DNA of 62,919 nt, counting the filler, from Platydemus manokwari (Eukaryota): assembly GCA_037951405.1 (NCBI GenBank). It is 5 parts of 5 records of this genome, joined end to end, with 100 filler letters (N's around TTAATTAATTAA, not from the genome) between each part and the next. Parts side by side here need not be neighbours in the genome. Positions count along the whole stretch, not along the records: positions 12,167 to 22,968 come from JBBMOY011104331.1; 4 more parts are not named here. One strand, 5' to 3'. The notes beneath the pieces are model-generated. The model made no database searches. It was not told the origin of the DNA and was given only the letters and a program-made list of their open reading frames with translations. Position 1 is the stretch's first letter. Each line of letters opens with the position of its first letter. A program made the position numbers and the translations under genes. Below, one piece after another: positions 12,167 through 24,009 of the stretch.

Positions 12167-12217
12167 TAATTCAACAATCTGTTTATGGAATTTATTAAAT
12201 CTAATTTGGGATTACTC

Positions 12218-12285
12218 ATTTGTGGGCGTTATTCGTTTTGTGGGCGTTATTCGTTTTGTGGTTGTGGGCGTTTATTTGTGGGTTG
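12218..12285. repeat. Short tandem repeat, 18-bp unit TTTGTGGGCGTTATTCGT (two full copies plus degenerate ones)
   Basis: Directly visible next to the gap. Confidence 0.75.
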
Positions 12286-12934
12286 GATCCCAACAATCAT
12301 AAAATTTATAAAAAATATAATCAAACTTGATAATTTTCATACTTAATGTGAAAAAGTGTACTGATTTATTTTACTGAATTTAAACAATATCCCTAACCAG
12401 TTTATAAATTTAAGTCAACTATAAAGATAAGCAATAAATAGTAATTTGACTTGTCGAACATTTCCTTCTGGGGTTAATAAAAACGAGTTCATACCAAAAG
12501 TAATAAATTAGTAATATCGAATAATACTCTCCAATACTTTAAATTTTTATTGTAAATAATTATTAATGAATTCAATGAACATGATTTAACATTCTGCACA
12601 TGTGAAAACTAATACAACTTACAACCCAATCAGACAAAATGTTGAATCAATAAACATTCCCAAAGAAAGCCCGATTCATTATCAACACAATGACGAATAT
12701 GTAATCTCTGTAATTGAAATCATTCATTTCTTGTAGAACATCAAAAATAATATATAAGGCCAGTTATATTTTGATAAACACAAATAAATGAATAAATAGA
12801 CGAAAATCTGACAGTGACAAAAACGTTGTTCGAAAGCTATTTATTAACGAATCAAAAGTATAACATAAAAATAATTCAAGATAAATTGAAACTGCATTTT
12901 CCATCAAAGCTCACTAAAAATGATTCCATTAAAT

Positions 12935-14339
12935 TCAAATGTAATTCATGGATTCTCGGATGAATATTTCTACATTGTGTGTCAGCAATAAGAGAGTGAA
13001 TTGAATGAATAAATGAATGAGGGAAAATGATGTTTCGTGTCTTGACCAAATTAAGCTCGGAGCAAAAACATTTGCTAGATTTTGGAATGGCATTTTGTTC
13101 TGTTCGGAATGATCAGCGACCTAAAATGATCAATGGTATAAGTAAGTACCTTAAATAACTTTCACAATAAGAATTTGTTAAATTTCCCTATTTTTCCTAT
13201 CATAATTATAAGAAGTATTTTTATGAAATCAGTCGTAATTGATTAATACCATCCAAATGAAGAGAAATTAAAATATTAATCGAGTATAAACAATAACCGA
13301 TTTAACTAAAAACTCATTAAAATTAATTTGAAGTTGATAAAAATGAATGAGAAACAAAGTGCATCTGCTCTGAGACTTATCAGATTCAACTATAATAAAG
13401 AGATTTTTATGACAGATAATGATTAGTCGAACTACAATTGACAACATCTATGTTTCAATATTTCTTATAAGTTGCTAAATTCTAGGTTAATTATGATTCA
13501 TCATTTTTCGATCAATACAGCCAATTAAATTTAATCAAATTTGGTAAAGTGTTGCTAAAAATTTTGAAAAACTAAATTTAAAATTCTATACCTAACAGTA
13601 AATTAATGATGTGTGAGTAATAATAATAATATTTGTCTTATAAAATCATATTTTGATTGCACAGATTTATTGGATAAATAGTTTTGTAGTATAAATATTC
13701 GAAAGAATCAAATTTTCAAAATATTGATTTCATTAGAATTGAAAATCTAGTTGTCAAGAAAAAATGAAACAGTTGTTTCATTGGAAACGGTAAACCTTAT
13801 CACAACTGAACTGCCTAATGGATTGAAAGGATATTCTTTCAATATTCATTTTATGAAAACAGTATTTAGCATATTAGAAAGAAGATAAATCCAAAGATAA
13901 TCTCTAGAAAATTGTTGAGCCTGTTGTATGCGATAATATACTTATTCGTTAGGAAAATTAATTTCAAAATGTAATAAAATTGTTAATACACTGAAGAGAA
14001 AAGAGCTGAATTAACATCTGTACAAAAGAACATGCCAGAATTTAATTGGCAATGTGAACCAGATGTCGATCAAAAAAGAATTCATAAAAGTGTTGTGAAA
14101 GAAAAAATCTGTTGTCGCCAAATTACAAAACTTTGAAAAAAATAATAATTGCTACTAAATTTAAATACATTTATATACACATATATGGATTTCGATTTTT
14201 ATGGGTAAAAATTTTTGTTTTAAATCACTCACTTCTATTAGAAAATCAATAAGATATTGTAGAACTTGATAATTATAATCTGGTAACATTTCACAAACAA
14301 TTGTTCGAATGTGCTCAACTGCAACATCTGTCTGACAAT
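12935..14339 (-). CDS. C-terminal part of an ARHGAP1/ARHGAP8-like RhoGAP domain, two exons (14339..14233, 13120..12935)
   Basis: Spliced: (D)CQTDVAVEHIRTIVCEMLPDYNYQVLQYLIDFLIE|VADHSEQNKMPFQNLANVFAPSLIWSRHE..IFIRESMNYI*, matching the RhoGAP LP..NY.VL.YL..FL..V..HS..NKM...NLA.VF.P.L motif. GT-AG sites; AATAAA near 12845. No N-terminal GAP exons seen. Confidence 0.85.
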
Positions 14340-15279
14340 CTAAATAAACCAATGAAATACAAATTGAGACAATCTACACATCAAAACTTAATAGATGAAC
14401 GCGCGTGTAATACAATATAAACAATACAATTAGATACATCATATGATTTATCAGATATTGAAACAAGCTCGCAAATAACTATCGTTGCAATAGAATAGGT
14501 GATTATGTTGATTTCAGAGGAAAAAATCAATAAAAAGTCGTATAATGAAACAAAAAACAGTCAGTCTTATTTATAAAAATTATAATATTAAAGCAACTGA
14601 ATTATTTATTTGTGCTTCTTAATTATCGCAATAATAATTAATAGATACCGCCTGTATTCCTTATAAAATGGACACAATCATCACTATCCAATAAAACATG
14701 ATGTAACACAATTTAACTGGATGATAAACCCTAACTGTGAGACTAATTTAAAAATCTGACAAATAATTAAAATTTACATAGGATTAAAATTAAAAATGGC
14801 GCCAAAAAATATTTAAAAAAAATTATATTAAAAATTAAAATAGTAAGTAAGGTTTATTTAAGAATACTATGTAGATAAGATTAAAATTAATAATTAAAAA
14901 ATATTTTTAAATAATTATATTAAAAATATTTTTATTTATAAAATGATCGTGCTCGAAACAGAACTGTAATTTCTTAAAGTTTTTTAAAAATAATTTTTCA
15001 TAAAAAATAAAAATTTAAAAATAAAAACCTGATAATTTTACTTTAAAAAAAAGAGGGTTGAAAATAATCGAATATTTGTTTAAAACGATACAAATTATTT
15101 GTTCGGTGAAATCATGTGTTTTGAAATAAATATAAAAATGTAGAAGTTTTAGCCACTAACAGTCACATTTCTAATGATTAAATGACAGCTCAATGTATCA
15201 AATCATCACCAAATCTCTCAACAAAACTTTCAACAAATATCGACAACCGTCAATCATTATCAAATTAACAACAAATCAC

Positions 15280-18200
15280 CTGCAAATTCATTGAAATGAT
15301 TGCCAATATCAAATCCACAATAGTTGTAATCAGCATATTCGAAATCAATAAAATGAATTCGATCTACAAATCAATGACAATAATCATATCTCAAATCAAT
15401 CGATAAATAACCTTTATTTAAATTCATAATCAAGTTATTCACCAATAAATCGTTATGACAAAATGTAATCGGATAATTGGGCTTGACCAAATGTCTTTCC
15501 AAATATGCTATTTCTGTCAACACAGTTGATTTAGTTGGAAAATAAAGTACATATCTAATGATAAATCAATTGAATGATGTTCGAAATATTGTAAAAATAA
15601 ATAATAATCAGAACAATAAAACAAAACTGTATCCAACAGTCAATTGTATTGATTGACAGCCTATCACATACTTTTTATTTTTTTCGGGATCATCTAAATG
15701 ATCTGGCAAGTGATTTGCAATTTCTCGCATTTTTCGAAACAAAAATGGTTCTTTAGAACGGCTTAGATTTAATTTTACAGTATGTAGTTTGGCTAATTCC
15801 TTGGTGATGAGCCTGTTTTAATAAATAATCAAATACAATATGGATATAATTTAATTACGAAATGTGATTATCATCTCTAATATCATACAGATCGAGCATT
15901 GAACCATGAATATATTGATAACAACATCCATTTGCAAATTTTCCCCATACATGAGCAGCTAGACCATGTTCCGATAAGGCTACCATATTTTCCATTTCGA
16001 TATCCCTGTCAAGTAATGCTTCTCCATAAATTCGAACCAAAACCATATCGGTGGAATTTGTTAAGATTTCATCTATGTAAACACCAAATAAAAGATTCGA
16101 GATTCCTCGTTCGAATTTCTGAATTTAATGAAAGAAAGTAGATTAATAAAATGTTTTTACAATTTGTTTAGTTATCAAATCTGATGATTTAATCATTCTG
16201 AAAACCTAGTAGAGTTTCTTATTAGGTTCCTCTACTGCTCTTCCGCAGAGTCCAATATCGTGCAGATAAAAAGGAACGCCATTGTAGATTAAATCTTTGA
16301 ATATCACATTTATTAGACTTTGAAAAGTTCCTAGTGCTGTACATTATCCAAAGACTAGTCTGTTAAAAATAGAACTAAATGTTTCTAGTGCTGAACAACG
16401 TTTTCAACTTAAAATCTTTCTCAAGTTTGACCTAATAATGTACTTAGCCTGAATCTAGCGTGAAGGAGACTGTTGCACCACACAACTGCGTGTACTTTAT
16501 TTATTTGGCGTCTTCCTTCATCACTTCTATTCTATCACCAGTTGATAAGCGTTTTATTGACTCAACTTCACTCACAAGATACCCACAAGAGGTTGGAGAA
16601 AGTTTTTTCTCTTCCATGAAAAGTGAATTAGCAAAATCACCTGCTTCACTTTCGGTTTGAATATCGTTTTCATCTTTTTCATCATGGACACACAATATTT
16701 TCCTAAAATTATCGTAACTAGGCTTTCTGGCTAAATGACTTTCTCTGTACGAATTCCCTTCTTTTCCGCATATTAAACATGTATTCAACAGTGGATATTC
16801 AAACATCCGGTGTCCAAGCTCTTCACAGCAAAATCAGCCTACTGGTTTTAAATAATCACCACATGTCGTGGGTTTTCCTCTACAATCGTTTCAGAATTTA
16901 GACTTGCATTCATTGACCTCTTATTGTTTGGAGATTCCCTGTGATTAACTAATGTTCGATGGTATTCGTTTACACTAAAACCTCTTCCCTGCACGATTAT
17001 ACTTGGATTTGTGTAAAAAGTTTCCTGAAATATTTTTCTCGGGATATTTTTAAATAATCAATGGGTATGTCTTTTTTTAAACTTTTATCGGCATAATCGT
17101 AGTTAGCTACCCCAAATTGATAACCAGCTCTCTTCTTTTTTCGCCGGACATTTCAGGGTCTTTCAATTTCTTGATACTTAGACCACGTAGAATAAATAGA
17201 CTTCAAATTTCTTCAAAAGTGTTTTTCTTTTCAAACACCTCCGTCACCAGTTTCTTTACCCGAAGCTTATAACTGCGGTACTTTTTACCTAGTCTTTACA
17301 GCATTGATGCTAAATCCTGAATCTTGTTGACCACTATAATAGTATGTCAGAATTTATTCAAAAACCATTTCTCTATCACTTGATTTGAAACCATTTCTTT
17401 AAAACTACTGTATTCTTATCATAGCTGTTTGGTGTGTCAGTATATCTCAACAGTACATCAAATGCAAATGGCATCTGCAAAATCCTTGGTTGTCCTAACC
17501 ATTTTTCAGTATCTTGGATTGACAAATAGAAGACCGACGGCTTTGGAATCAACAACTCCAGAGTTTTTTGAGGCAGATCAGAAAAACTGTTCAGCCTCTC
17601 TTCTCTTTTGACTTTCATAAAAACATTTATTTCGGTGTAGTCGCCAGTACAAACGCCATACAAATTCATAAAAGATTATCATTTCGAAAAACACATTATA
17701 CAGAATATTTAAACAAATCGAAAATCAAAGATTTATCTAACTATAACTAAAGACTTTAATCAGCTTGTGAATCAAATAGGAGTTTACGACAATGTTCTAT
17801 CCGATCATAATAATAAATAAATCGGTTTTTATTAGTTTTCAGTTTCACTTGTACAGTGTTTATTTAATTAAGTAATTATGTGATATTAGCGAGAATTCAC
17901 TGTCAAACAATTTAGTAATAAATCTTCCAATATAAAGAATATAGATCACTAATAATGGTAGATTTGGTGTTATACTATCTCAATAAGCAATCACAACTAT
18001 TTTTATATGACAACTAGGTCTGTTTTAAATGTACAAAGGTTCCAAAAGCCTTGAGAAATAATTATTAAATAATGGGATATATGATATCCTATCCATACAC
18101 TACAAGCTCAGTATATCGATAAGACGACCTGTTGATATTATCAATAAATCAATCAACAAACTCTTAACTGTTATGATAGGCTTGATTACAATTTCTATTT

Positions 18201-18540
18201 TAATAACAATTCAACAAATAAATTTTGATTTTTAATTTTGAATGTTAATAATTATTATTTATATTATCGAAAATAAAGTGATTATATTTCTTGTTTCATT
18301 ACAATATTGTTTTGTAGGTGTTTAATTTTCACTGAATATTATTATATTAATAAACGTAATAATCAATAATTAACTAAAAAATAAATGTGAACAATTGGAA
18401 TTTCAATAAATGCCATAAATTACTTTTGTTTTTAAGCAACTGTTATCCCAGTATGGCCTTATTTCTTCAATAAGTGGTTTGACATCCTCATTGAAACTGT
18501 TTCCATGGATTTTAATATTTGGAAATATTTTATATGCCAT
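15280..18540 (-). CDS. ETNK: Ethanolamine kinase (ETNK/eas-like), first five exons (18540..18424, 16118..15859, 15812..15672, 15554..15412, 15363..15280); C-terminal exons not found
   Basis: Spliced MAYKIFP..IEEIRPYW..K|KFERGISNLLFG..VLVRIYG..LAKLH..ITFCHNDLLVNN (Brenner motif)..FIDFEYADYNYCGFDIGNHFNEFA (choline/ethanolamine kinase motif). All junctions are GT-AG with consistent phases. Confidence 0.92.
16165..17400 (-). mobile_element. Degenerate Ty3/Gypsy LTR-retrotransposon internal relic (gag-protease-RT) inside ETNK intron 1
   Basis: Two decayed zinc knuckles (FCCEELGHRMFEYP; TCLICGKEGNSYRES), protease motif VSFTLDSG, then RT FNRLVFG*CTALGTFQSLINVIFKDL..VPFYLHDI (decayed FGL.NAP.TFQ and YLDD). 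The 5' boundary is approximate. Confidence 0.82.
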
Positions 18541-21500
18541 AGAAAACCAAAATAAATCTACAAATAGATACAAATAAATTAAATTGAAACAATTGTGAAT
18601 TAAATGAAATGCTTATATAAATGATAAAAGTTTTCAAAATCGAATCAAAATATTTATTCGATAAAAACTTTACAAAAATTATTTCGTTACTAAATGACTT
18701 CAAATACTTAACGTTTTAAAATCAATACATCATTTGAAAATAGTTTAAGTTAAATTAACTAATTATTTCAAACAAAATTTCAATTGAAAAGTATTTATAT
18801 GCAAATGATTTCGTTTTGATTCAATTAATGATAAGTAGGTTAATATAATCAAGGAATAATTTTCTTAGTTATAATTTATTTTTAAAGTAAAAACTTTCTA
18901 TAACGAAGTAAACTAAATGCGTTCTCATTAAAGAATGTTAAAATACAACAACTGATAATTATACTAAATATTTAGCAACAAAACACAAGTCTTATTATTA
19001 TTCTGTAAAATCCACTGACACTTTTATTTCGTGACTGTGCGATGGTACATATGTGAAATGTATGTGGTGGCTTATATAGCGAGTTTCTGTAGGTAAGTCT
19101 TTGTGCCTTGTTATCTAGTTTTACACTGTGTTGTTTGGTTTGAGGATAACGAGCTGAATCCTTTTAGCATTGAAAATTTTTTCCTTGTTCCTGTGGTAAA
19201 GTTACTATTAGGTTTAAATATAAGACAGATTCAGTAATCTGAAGGAGCTTTAATATTTATGGTTGAGTCTTACTTCGAATTAAAACATAATACTTCTGAT
19301 TTTGATTTAGTTTACCGTGGAGTAAATTCTTAAATATTTTCGAAACATTCACTTTTCATTATCATAGAGTTCAAGTTATTTTCACTCCGATTTATATGAC
19401 ATTGAAATTCCATAACATCATTGATTGCCCTGTAACAAGTTTGTGTTTGTTCTAATTGTAGTTTCTTATTACTAGTTCTTTTTTTTCAATAGCAAATTGT
19501 TTACATTTCACTTCACGTAATTTCTCTAGGAACATCTTTCTTGTAGTTAATCAAAAGGACAAGGCAGCCTCTATAATCGACAATGTTTCTGCAAGCAAAT
19601 ATCCTTTAAACTTTTTAACATAAAGAATTTTTATTTTTCAAAGCCATAAATTACTAATTGGACTATAGCAAGATGCTGTCAAACTTCGAGCCTGATATGC
19701 AAACGAATTTTTTACGAAATTTTTTTTCGTATCAAGCAAAATGGTATTAACTTGAGTATACAAGCATATGCATTTCGAAAACTGATTTAAATTTTCAGAC
19801 TCTGTAAAACACACCAAGCAAAAATGTTGCATTGACTCCGATCATATTTTTGTTGTTAATATATTTTTACGCGTGTTTAGTGAAGTAAAGCACTAAATAT
19901 ACAAAAAATCAATGAGACGGTGCGGGATAAAATGGTGACATATTCAGATAGTGAAATGTAGAAAAAGAACAATTGCTTATTATTGTAAAATGATATGCTA
20001 AATGGAAAAACATGCTGGAACCAAAACGAAAATAAAAAATTGAGACAGAATCCCTGAAATATGACCTGGTGTAGTAGGTAAGTGATTGAGATAAAAACAA
20101 TGTTCAATGAGTTGACTCTAAAGAAAGAATGGGAACGACCAAAAGAAATAAGCGGAATTTTGACCAAAATATTCTGGAAAGAAGATTTCTAAATAAAAGA
20201 TATAAAAAGATGGAGATAATTAAGCGTAAATCTGGAAGCATAAATGGAAGCCGCTGAAAAACAATTCCAATCAATCCAACATCCAATTCAACCAAACACA
20301 ATTGTGATTAGAATGTGATTGAAAATTTTTTCATATGAATGAAACTAATATATGATTTTCAAATCGATTTTTGTGATCTAGAAATTACTATTTTTATATT
20401 AATTAATTACGGTGAAAAATAATTATTTGGAATGGATGTCGATTAGAATATATTGGTAGGGTCAATTCTTATATTTTTTGATATGCGGTAGATAATAATA
20501 GTACAAGTAGATAATAGTAGATAATAAACTACCCTTAAAATGTCATGAATTTTTGAAGATTGATTTTATACATTTTATTTAAAAGAATGGTTTGACTTGG
20601 TTCAAACCGTTTAAATTAATAATAGACAGATAAATGTTGTATCATATAGAACGTTAAAATTCAGTTAAAATACTGCTTGAAGAGAAAAATTTTAAATCAC
20701 TGAATAGATTGAAAAATAATTTTCCTCTCAAAACTGTGCTTCTTTCCAATTGTCAATCGCTATTTAAAACTTTCAACAAGGTTAGAAAAAATTATAATTA
20801 AATACCAAAACCCAAATGATCGATTTGAAAATGTAATTCAACAATGAATGTAGGCATATTTAGCGTTTAAATATATTGAAGTTAATTTACAAATGTTTGT
20901 AAATCTTTTCTTCGTCTTATTTATATTGCCTTTTTTTCAGTGCTACTCCTTCTTTCTAATATTTTATTTACTTTTCTCTTTTTTATTTACTTTCTTTATC
21001 TCTTTATTTATCGTTTTTATTTTTAGATATTAATATTTTGTTGTTCTATTTTTAGGCTTTTTAAATGCAATTTTCACATTTTGTTCTAGCAATTTCTAAA
21101 AAATGCCTATTGGTAATTCTTCTTAATCAGTTGGATTCTGGTGCTCAGCAATAAATATCATTTAAAAATTAAATATTATTTAAAATATTATCCGGAAATT
21201 ATTTTGCACCAACTGTTCTTTGTCTGTTGGAATCCAAATAAGTTTTAGATGCTAGTATCTGTTTTATAAACTTCATTAAAATTATAAATAGAAAAATTGT
21301 ATGAAGTTAGTAAATCTTTAACAGTTTGTCTATTGTCTACATACCGCCTACATAATAATTTATGAATGGATTTTCCTCTATGTCTCTCGTGCTATTGGCA
21401 TGTCTTGGCTTTTGTTGCCTTCTAGTGATGTGCACCAACTGATGATAAAATTCTAATTTTGGGTTAGTCTTTTGAAAGCATCCGATTTGCTATAAGCAAG

Positions 21501-21799
21501 GAATAAATCGTAATTGTGTGCGTCGACCTTTCTGATGGTTTTTCTAAACTCCTCATGATTATCCTGCTTGTTTTTGTTACACAAGGAACATAAGACGCAG
21601 CACATATTCTGTATAAAGAAGATTTAGAGAAGATATAAAACAGTTAGAAGAAATAGAGTTTTTTATGTAGATAAAAATGAACAATCGATACAATGTCAAT
21701 TAAGAATGCAAAGAAAATCAAAGATTTTAAAGAAAGCGGGGTGTGAGAATTTTAAATTGAATTAAATTTTTTAGAGATTTAACTTTGTATAAAATTTAA

Positions 21800-21913
21800 T
21801 TCTATTTAAATATAAGATAAAATTAATTTGTTTAAATATTTGTATTTACATTTGATTGGATGTCTTTTCAGTTCGTTTTTAATGTGTGGTTTTTAAAATA
21901 GTATCGGTTTACA
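21800..21913 (+). repeat. Dispersed direct repeat, copy 1 (copy 2 at about 23165-23273)
   Basis: Identical 41-bp core TTTTCAGTTCGTTTTTAATGTGTGGTTTTTAAAATAGTATC at 21865-21905 and 23225-23265, with weaker similarity upstream. Confidence 0.8.
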
Positions 21914-22886
21914 AATATCATATATGGATTGAGTTAAAATGCGTTGTTGTACATGGATTGAGACTTGAATAGAATTTTATGAATAAGTTCTGAGTTTTGT
22001 TAAAGAAATAAAAGGCAATTAAATACTAGCTGTGCTTACATTTATTTATATGTCATTTATAGACATCACCGTTGAGTTTATTTAACAAAACTTTACCCAA
22101 TATATTCACGGATATTATTGATACTTTTTCCTTTAACCACTATAGCTATTGTGCCACTTATTATTCCAATCACTCTCAATCCATTTTTAATTGTAAGAAT
22201 TTCTGTTGTTATCATGTTTGTTATATTCACTTTTGTTTCTGCCATTCAGTTTTGTTTATTTTATTTTCATTGCCTCGATTTCTAAAGTTTATCCATTTCC
22301 GTTGTCATTTTTCCATATTTTTCTCTACATCTGAAAAGTTACATTTCGCTGTTCCTTAACAATTTTCTATCCAGCTCGCATTCTGACGTATCTGGAGCAT
22401 GAGAAAAAAACACTGGAATAAACTTCAAATTGCAAACACATTCATCAGTAAGCAATTCGAGATTTTCGATTTCGCTTTTCAATCAGTACAATGCATTTGG
22501 GATGTCAAAATTAAATGCTTCTACGTTTTGATGGAAACAATTCTTTGCATGAAATCTTCCCATAAGCTCAAGCTAGTAACATTTAAGAAATTACTAAATG
22601 CGATGAACTAATTGGCACGTTAGTTTGTATATTGAAAAGTTTCCTACACAATGTGTGCCTTGACTTGACTTCTTTCCTTGGTCTGATTTAATTATCTTTG
22701 AAAAATTTTAAAATCAGATTTTTATGAAATATTAATTTTTTAAATAATTGCAATTTAAATATAATTTCTGTGTCGGGACTTTTCATTTAATCTCCACTTC
22801 GCCACTTACAATTACTATTCTTTGTTTTTATTCTGTTTCTAGTAAAGATACGAATTTTATTCTTTTTTCGATTTGGTTAACTAAGC

Positions 22887-22909
22887 CAGGAGTCTCCAAA
22901 GTACGGCCC
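22887..22909 (+). mobile_element. hAT (Charlie-like) terminal sequence, other end lost or in the gap
   Basis: CAGGAGTCTCCAAAGTACGGCCC resembles the CAGGGGTxTCCAAACTACGGCCC hAT terminus pattern. Confidence 0.55.
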
Positions 22910-24009
22910 ACCAAGCTTACTATGAAACACACGAACATTATGACAAAATTAAGTGATACACATATTTANNNNNNNNNNNNNNNNNNNNNNNNNNNNNNNN
23001 NNNNNNNNNNNNTTAATTAATTAANNNNNNNNNNNNNNNNNNNNNNNNNNNNNNNNNNNNNNNNNNNNTGTTGTTTTAAATAAATTTATGTACAACAAAT
23101 TTTTATTTCCAATTTTGTCCGCGAACTTTATTTACAACCTAATAATTCTGTATAAAAGTGTTTTGTATAAATTCAAATTAAGTTGTTTAAATAATTGTAG
23201 TTAAATATAATTTGATGTAGCGATTTTTCAGTTCGTTTTTAATGTGTGGTTTTTAAAATAGTATCTACTTACACTAATAATTAATTTAATAAGTAAAATA
23301 AAATAAATACTGTTGATAAGTATATCTCAATAAGTCACGAGAAGATATCCTATAATCTCATTAAGTCTACAAATAATCAATTGAATACAGACACACTCTT
23401 TGAGCCTTTCTTTCCCTCTCGTTATAAATCTTATATCTAACAGTAACATCAGGATTGGGAATCTATTGGATTACACATACCATGATAGTAACTGACTGAT
23501 TTATCATTTAAATCGAAATTACCAATTTTATGAAAGCAATGTTGATCGAACTAACCTACGATTTATATCAAAAACTGTACTAACTTTTTTTGTCTATTAA
23601 ACCAAATTTGTTTGATATCGATTTTATTATTCTGAGGGGCTTTGTAACCTTTAGGATTGAAACTATGTCTTCGGTCCACAAGGGGTTTGGTTCTTAGTAC
23701 GTGTATGGAGTCAGAAATAATAATCATTGTTGTACAGAGGGTGTTCTGAAATTTTTTTCAAAGTCCTACCTATAATGAGAGTGTCGAATCAAAAATAATG
23801 TCACTCAAAACAACAATGGATTTCAAAAGAGTAATTAATGCATACGAAAGCTTAAATGATCAAAGAAAAGACGTCTAAAATTCAGAAAAATCAGTAAAAA
23901 CAAATCCAAGGGGTAATAATAAATAAATAGGGCTTGAGGATCCAAAATTGAATAATTAATAGAGGCTTGTTATGAATTAAATAAATAATTAATTTTTCGG
24001 TTATTACTA

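Follow-up and report, generated by a model that had tools for sequence, protein, structure and literature searches.

A possible young, in-frame chimera of an ethanolamine kinase gene and an ARHGAP1-type RhoGAP gene in Platydemus manokwari

Do seven consecutive exons that begin as an ethanolamine kinase (ETNK) and end as a RhoGAP make up a single gene, or do they only resemble one? The question is raised by a contig of Platydemus manokwari (JBBMOY011104331.1, assembly GCA_037951405.1), which occupies positions 12167-22968 of the window, that is, of the whole stretch of 62,919 nucleotides (nt) analyzed here, in which five parts of this genome are joined by filler. A sequence-only reading of this DNA had proposed an in-frame ETNK-RhoGAP chimeric gene at 12935-18540, with three ways to account for it: a fusion derived from a deletion or from exon shuffling, two interleaved genes on the same strand, or a chimeric contig. 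We tentatively favor a true, young intron-to-intron rearrangement that gave rise to a chimeric, probably inactive open reading frame (ORF), an explanation to which we would assign somewhat less than an even chance.

The 10.8-kb piece at 12167-22968 consists of AT-rich eukaryotic DNA (GC content ~0.19-0.35) and is free of N, so that, as stated by the sequence-only reading, no gap separates the kinase exons from the RhoGAP exons. It contains seven exons, all on the minus strand and all bordered by GT-AG, with introns of 2305, 46, 117, 48, 940 and 1112 nt in exon order. The first five exons end in phase 1 (...NEFA-G/gtgatt), and the sixth, which follows the acceptor tttatttag/AT TGT, is entered in phase 1. 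Joined together, the seven exons comprise 1038 nt (745 + 293), or 345 codons, without a stop before the TGA. Our recomputation gave the same figures as the earlier reading, namely, five ETNK exons totaling 745 nt and ending in phase 1 at 15280, an exon that starts in phase 1 at 14339 and, together with a terminal exon, encodes the last helices of a RhoGAP domain, and a stop-free ORF of 1038 nt and 345 amino acids.

Residues 1-248 of the predicted protein match the Pfam family Choline_kinase (PF01633; E-value 2e-50, 172.1 bits against a cut-off of 29), covering only positions 3-208 of the 300 positions of the profile. The closest relative of this half, P0001, is an environmental full-length ETNK of 354 amino acids that is 65% identical to it and runs past the NEFAG sequence into a normal C-terminus, and the start of exon 1 coincides with the start of P0001 (residues 1-39, 51% identity). 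Named animal ETNKs are 37-41% identical to the kinase half. Proteins of this family carry the Brenner phosphotransferase motif, HxDxxxxN, and the choline-kinase motif, ..IDFEY..YN..FDI.NHF.E.., and both are intact in the ORF, the former as CHNDLLVNN in exon 4 and the latter as IHFIDFEYADYNYCGFDIGNHFNEFA in exon 5. The ~105 C-terminal residues that are missing from the ORF (Pfam positions ~209-300) are present in P0001 and in human ChoK alpha (2cko), and include the conserved ...LASH..W..W... helices with their pair of tryptophans; on alignment, these helices fall in the substrate-pocket region of human choline kinase alpha. Compared with ETNK1/ETNK2 (EKI), the locus keeps both kinase motifs as well as the intron after NEFA-G, the latter common to an abalone ETNK, but ends at Pfam position 208, without the pocket-lining C-terminal helices of the ChoK and ETNK structures.

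Two further observations concern the kinase exons. P0002, an environmental ETNK fragment of 220 amino acids (55% identity), ends at the point that corresponds to the end of exon 4 plus one glycine, as expected from reading into a phase-1 gt intron, which suggests that the position of the intron after exon 4 is common to P0002. If the donor of exon 5 were left unused, read-through (15279-15259) would add GDLLLI and a stop, resulting in a truncated kinase of ~254 amino acids.

Residues 249-345 match the Pfam family RhoGAP (PF00620; E-value 3e-16, 60.1 bits against a cut-off of 24.5), and here only positions 91-147 of 148 are covered, that is, the last third of the domain. The closest relative of this tail is P0121, a protein of 448 amino acids with CRAL_TRIO and RhoGAP domains encoded by an environmental transcript contig (JGI 3300030569 and SRR7686494), which aligns along its whole length with human ARHGAP1 (6r3v, E-value 1e-87) and whose nearest named relatives are flatworm proteins, with Macrostomum first at 45%. 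These relatives suggest that the animal probably belongs to a lophotrochozoan lineage that has been poorly sampled. The last 97 residues of the ORF are 77% identical to P0121 residues 352-448 and stop at the identical position; taken by exon, the identity is 74% for exon 6 (P0121 residues 352-390) and 78% for exon 7 (residues 388-446). The NKM..N-L-A segment is retained in exon 7 as NKMPFQNLANVFAP, including the conserved asparagine, which, by our own count on the alignment, corresponds to Asn391 of human ARHGAP1.

The arginine-finger motif, EGIFRRSA in P0121, is N-terminal to residue 352 of that protein and hence outside the retained part; the catalytic finger of the family belongs to a G-h-F-R motif (Arg282 of human ARHGAP1), and the helices that precede it are missing as well. 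The N-terminal BCH/CRAL_TRIO_2 domain of P0121 is likewise absent from the piece. Among known proteins, the tail is closest to ARHGAP1 (p50RhoGAP/Cdc42GAP), ARHGAP8 and Drosophila RhoGAP68F, which combine a BCH/Sec14-like part with a RhoGAP domain. It resembles P0121 in the C-terminus and in the position of the stop, keeps the NKM..NLA.VF.P segment and shares both intron positions of the RhoGAP part with the ARHGAP1-type genes of other lophotrochozoans, but it lacks the BCH/CRAL_TRIO domain and, of the GAP domain, the initial two thirds, EGIFRRSA included.

According to the sequence-only reading, neither the normal C-terminal exons of ETNK nor the N-terminal RhoGAP exons with the arginine finger occur in the window, and both absences were borne out by searches of the two strands of 12167-22968. 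Using tblastn with permissive settings, we detected in this piece no trace of ETNK residues 250-354 with P0001, P0002 and three other ETNKs as queries, and no trace of P0121 residues 1-351 with P0121 as the query. From 117 homologues we also derived a hidden Markov model (HMM) of the C-terminal part of ETNK; compared with all six-frame fragments of the piece, it yielded a best match with an E-value of only 2.3. Because parts are missing from both folds, the predicted protein would be expected, on established knowledge of these folds, to qualify neither as a normal ethanolamine kinase nor as a GAP.

The ETNK gene of the abalone Haliotis rubra (L008) has an intron at the position and in the phase of the exon-5 donor (…NEYA-G/gtgagt), and the ARHGAP1-type gene of Dimorphilus (L006) has a phase-1 intron at the position of the exon-6 acceptor; in the ARHGAP1-type gene of Macrostomum (L005), a phase-0 intron lies where exons 6 and 7 meet. 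Given the match of the donor in abalone and of the acceptor in Dimorphilus, both splice sites that flank the join are native to ancestral phase-1 introns, so that one intron has been joined to another, and the join stays in frame through the coincidence that the two introns are both in phase 1. Frame compatibility by itself is a one-in-three coincidence; the homology of each half goes well past anything that chance would produce.

Any rearrangement, or any mis-join, must have its breakpoint within 14340-15279, where neither tblastn nor the HMM of the ETNK C-terminus detected a coding remnant of ETNK or RhoGAP. The GC content of this interval is 0.19-0.23, and it contains a palindrome of ~55 nt at 14887-14942 along with a 32-nt sequence that is repeated directly (14804-14835 and 14896-14927). 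This low-complexity palindromic block is a plausible site of a true breakpoint or, equally, of a false join.

The two halves agree in base composition (exon GC of 0.315 in the kinase part vs 0.331 in the RhoGAP part; GC3 of 0.25 vs 0.28). This equality, together with the origin of the nearest relatives from similar environmental data (P0001 at 65% and P0121 at 77%), indicates that the halves seemingly belong to one genome, and a chimera across organisms was ruled out on these grounds. Neither half shows decay. Of the columns conserved across 80% or more of each family, the kinase half matches 67 of 100, compared to 61 of 100 for P0001, and the RhoGAP tail 25 of 36, compared to 27 of 36 for P0121; the nonsynonymous divergence (dN) of the tail from the P0121 mRNA is 0.15, with synonymous sites saturated. 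An ancient pseudogene relic was ruled out accordingly. The undecayed state of both halves does not, however, separate the remaining explanations, being what would be expected of a recent event, of an artefact and of a selected fusion alike.

We infer that the join is present in the DNA of the animal, that it is recent and that its product is probably inactive, and we read the locus as a chimeric pseudogene or a very young chimeric gene rather than as a novel enzyme with two functions. The event, whether a deletion, a partial duplication or some other form of intron-to-intron recombination, would have placed ETNK exons 1-5 ahead of the final two exons of an ARHGAP1/ARHGAP8-type (BCH-RhoGAP) gene, with both breakpoints in ancestral phase-1 introns. 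The donor at 15280 would then pair with the acceptor at 14339, producing the in-frame chimeric ORF of 345 amino acids, whose product would keep the ATP-binding and catalytic motifs of the kinase without the ethanolamine-pocket helices and, of the GAP domain, no more than the last helices, without the arginine finger. Intact copies of both genes would be located elsewhere in the genome. The shared donor in abalone and the shared acceptor in Dimorphilus form the pattern expected of recombination between two introns and thus support a rearrangement, and the lack of decay in either half, with the dN of 0.15 in the tail, would fit a young event.

Several observations weigh against such a rearrangement. 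The piece is only 10.8 kb long, and exons located further off are possible. The AT-rich palindromic block in the junction interval is a type of sequence prone to false joins, by assemblers and in amplification alike. In Macrostomum and Dimorphilus, ETNK is not found beside an ARHGAP1-type gene, so that a deletion between ancestral neighbors is without support from synteny, although synteny in these two animals is silent on the arrangement in the present species. Finally, in our search of public runs, no RNA run was on record for the organism, and the sole public run with this sequence consists of contigs of unclear kind, which may be the source of the assembly itself.

An artefact, that is, a mis-assembly or a chimera of amplification or of reads linking the ETNK and ARHGAP1-type loci of one genome within an AT-rich intron, is the rival that survives best, and we consider it unlikely but serious. 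The contig is short and the assembly fragmentary, the junction interval combines low GC with the palindrome and the repeat, both halves are as pristine as if each belonged to an intact gene elsewhere, and the only run that contains the region shares 0.77-0.89 of its words rather than 1.0. Conversely, there is no exact long repeat at the junction, where the internal repeats are local and 87-91% identical, and a random false join would seldom fall into two introns on one strand and in equal phase, an argument that is weakened by the fact that the case was picked for these very features.

To the three interpretations offered earlier we add another, which we regard as improbable, though still as a serious rival: one of the two genes would be intact and run off the piece, and a fragment of the other would be lodged in one of its long introns. 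In the most plausible form, intron 5 of ETNK would exceed 3.1 kb, with the last exons past 12167 and, inside the intron, a duplicated part of the RhoGAP gene comprising its 3' end; in the mirror form, an intact RhoGAP gene would have an intron of more than 8.6 kb containing a 5' ETNK fragment. A long intron with foreign material does occur in the same gene (intron 1, 2305 nt, with its higher-GC block), the RhoGAP part has an intron of its own, of 1112 nt, and the piece ends just 768 nt past the RhoGAP stop. However, the remaining ETNK introns measure only 46-117 nt, the inserted fragment must be young, co-oriented and phase-matched and must start exactly at a native acceptor, and the piece contains no sign of exons past either end.

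A functional fusion under selection, in which the last RhoGAP helices would provide a kinase-like N-terminal module with a novel cap at the C-terminus or with a surface for interactions, is in our view very unlikely. The locus does have an open, in-frame ORF with native splice sites, a native stop and a polyadenylation motif, and family-conserved residues are kept in both halves as they are in canonical relatives. On the other side stand the loss from the product of the parts essential to either activity and the outcome of the searches for the same architecture elsewhere. In a collection of 5.8 billion proteins, queried with the whole ORF and with the tail alone, no combined architecture was found, and a HMMER search run exhaustively over 1.84 billion representatives revealed no ETNK-RhoGAP protein among the best 150 of 2952 matches. 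The RhoGAP tail was present in none of the 267 ETNK-type proteins retrieved, and the ETNK head in none of the 120 ARHGAP1-type proteins. Two metagenome scans for the combined architecture returned none, and the fusion-protein query matched nothing; the second scan recovered only the P0121 mRNA and a distant RhoGAP of non-comparable exon structure. Nothing relevant to an ETNK-RhoGAP chimera was found in the literature. The nearest relatives of each half are instead separate, canonical, full-length proteins. The AlphaFold2 model of the fusion, obtained from a shallow alignment of 4 rows, has a mean predicted local distance difference test (pLDDT) score of 40 and is uninformative.

Thus, there is no support for a working fusion gene, given that neither expression nor conservation of the ETNK-RhoGAP join was found. 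The interpretation given by the sequence-only reading holds as far as the kinase core, the non-catalytic GAP tail, the in-frame join and the missing other halves are concerned, but not for a conserved or expressed fusion, of which we found none. It is highly improbable that the join is real and transcribed and that the 345-amino-acid protein is the product of a selected new gene in which three terminal RhoGAP helices replace the C-terminal helices of the kinase. Such a gene would encode a pseudo-kinase or an ATP-binding module with a new surface, obtained by phase-1/phase-1 exon shuffling that cuts both domains in the middle.

The top match of the search of representatives, P0122, was considered as a multi-domain candidate and rejected because it contains no RhoGAP and is only ~30% identical. 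In this predicted protein of 2262 amino acids from another organism, a methyltransferase domain and a 3'-5' exonuclease domain are followed by three ETNK domains in tandem. It is probably a merged gene model across a tandem ETNK array, and its three ETNK domains indicate that some lineages can have several copies of ETNK.

The arrangement suggested by the sequence-only reading in which two complete same-strand genes are interleaved, with exons of each in introns of the other, is extremely improbable. Its sole support is that, in principle, the sequence beyond the piece might contain both missing halves, whereas an intron of ETNK longer than 3.1 kb would have to cross an intron of RhoGAP longer than 8.6 kb, for which there is no precedent in such compact genes. 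The 8.6 kb that precede exon 6 yielded no RhoGAP 5' exon, and the 3.1 kb that follow exon 5 yielded no ETNK 3' exon.

Intron-to-intron joins are known to give rise to young chimeric or conjoined genes, such as jingwei of Drosophila and the human PRR5-ARHGAP8 read-through gene, and ARHGAP8 is the 3' partner in that known human conjoined transcript. The locus of P. manokwari belongs to a known kind, that of young chimeric genes or truncated gene fragments. Like jingwei and PRR5-ARHGAP8, it would combine, by way of introns of compatible phase, the 5' exons of one gene in frame with the 3' exons of a second; it differs in that both domains are cut through the fold rather than between domains, and in that the join is known from DNA sequence alone. 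What is new in the present analysis is that both splice sites at the junction occupy ancestral positions of phase-1 introns.

If the join is real, it represents a clean natural case in which recombination between introns of equal phase yields an in-frame chimeric ORF, caught before the decay of either half, and would be useful for studying how genes arise and die in an invertebrate lineage of which few members have been sampled. Should it be an artefact, it serves as a warning that short contigs of this assembly can mimic fusion genes through false joins. Either way, annotation of the locus as a bifunctional kinase-GAP is unwarranted.

The coordinates of the exons, of the introns discussed and of the associated features are compiled in Table 1.

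Table 1. Features of the ETNK-RhoGAP locus, in positions of the window
Feature	Coordinates	Strand	Description
ETNK exon 1	18424..18540	-	117 nt; ATG at 18540; MAYKIFPNIKIH...; donor gtaatt
Intron 1	16119..18423	-	2305 nt; higher-GC block inside
ETNK exon 2	15859..16118	-	260 nt; N-lobe, GISNLL...VLVRIYG; 70% identity to P0001 residues 38-123
ETNK exon 3	15672..15812	-	141 nt; homology to P0001
ETNK exon 4	15412..15554	-	143 nt; Brenner motif CHNDLLVNN
ETNK exon 5	15280..15363	-	84 nt; choline-kinase motif IHFIDFEYADYNYCGFDIGNHFNEFA-G; phase-1 end, native donor
Junction interval (would-be hybrid intron)	14340..15279	-	940 nt; GC 0.23
AT-rich low-complexity block in junction interval	14804..14942	.	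self-comparison and tandem repeat finder
RhoGAP penultimate exon (exon 6), ARHGAP1-type	14233..14339	-	107 nt; phase-1 entry; (D)CQTDVAVEHIRTIVCEMLPDYNYQVLQYLIDFLIE
Intron between RhoGAP exons 6 and 7	13121..14232	-	1112 nt; phase 0
RhoGAP terminal exon (exon 7)	12935..13120	-	186 nt with TGA at 12935-12937; VADHSEQNKMPFQNLANVFAPSLIW... through the native C-terminus
AATAAA, candidate polyadenylation signal	12840..12845	-	begins 89 nt past the stop; sequence motif only

The AATAAA downstream of the stop may be used as the polyadenylation signal. Within intron 1, a block of ~1.5 kb (~16200-17700) has a GC content of ~0.35, compared to ~0.25 around it, and contains several decayed minus-strand ORFs of ~100 amino acids, one of them with a degenerate cysteine-rich CxxCGK..G stretch; the two of these ORFs (~100 amino acids each) that were scanned against Pfam had no match. 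The block is possibly a dead mobile element. No recognizable gene was found in the 4.4 kb that precede the start of ETNK (18541-22968): the ORFs of 64-96 amino acids scanned there had no match in Pfam, and neither of the two gene families was matched. Four ORFs of the window, looked up by their exact products, gave no match. At the opposite side of the piece, 2.4 perfect tandem copies of an 18-nt repeat occupy 12219-12261, near the contig end, and may be the reason why the contig ends there.

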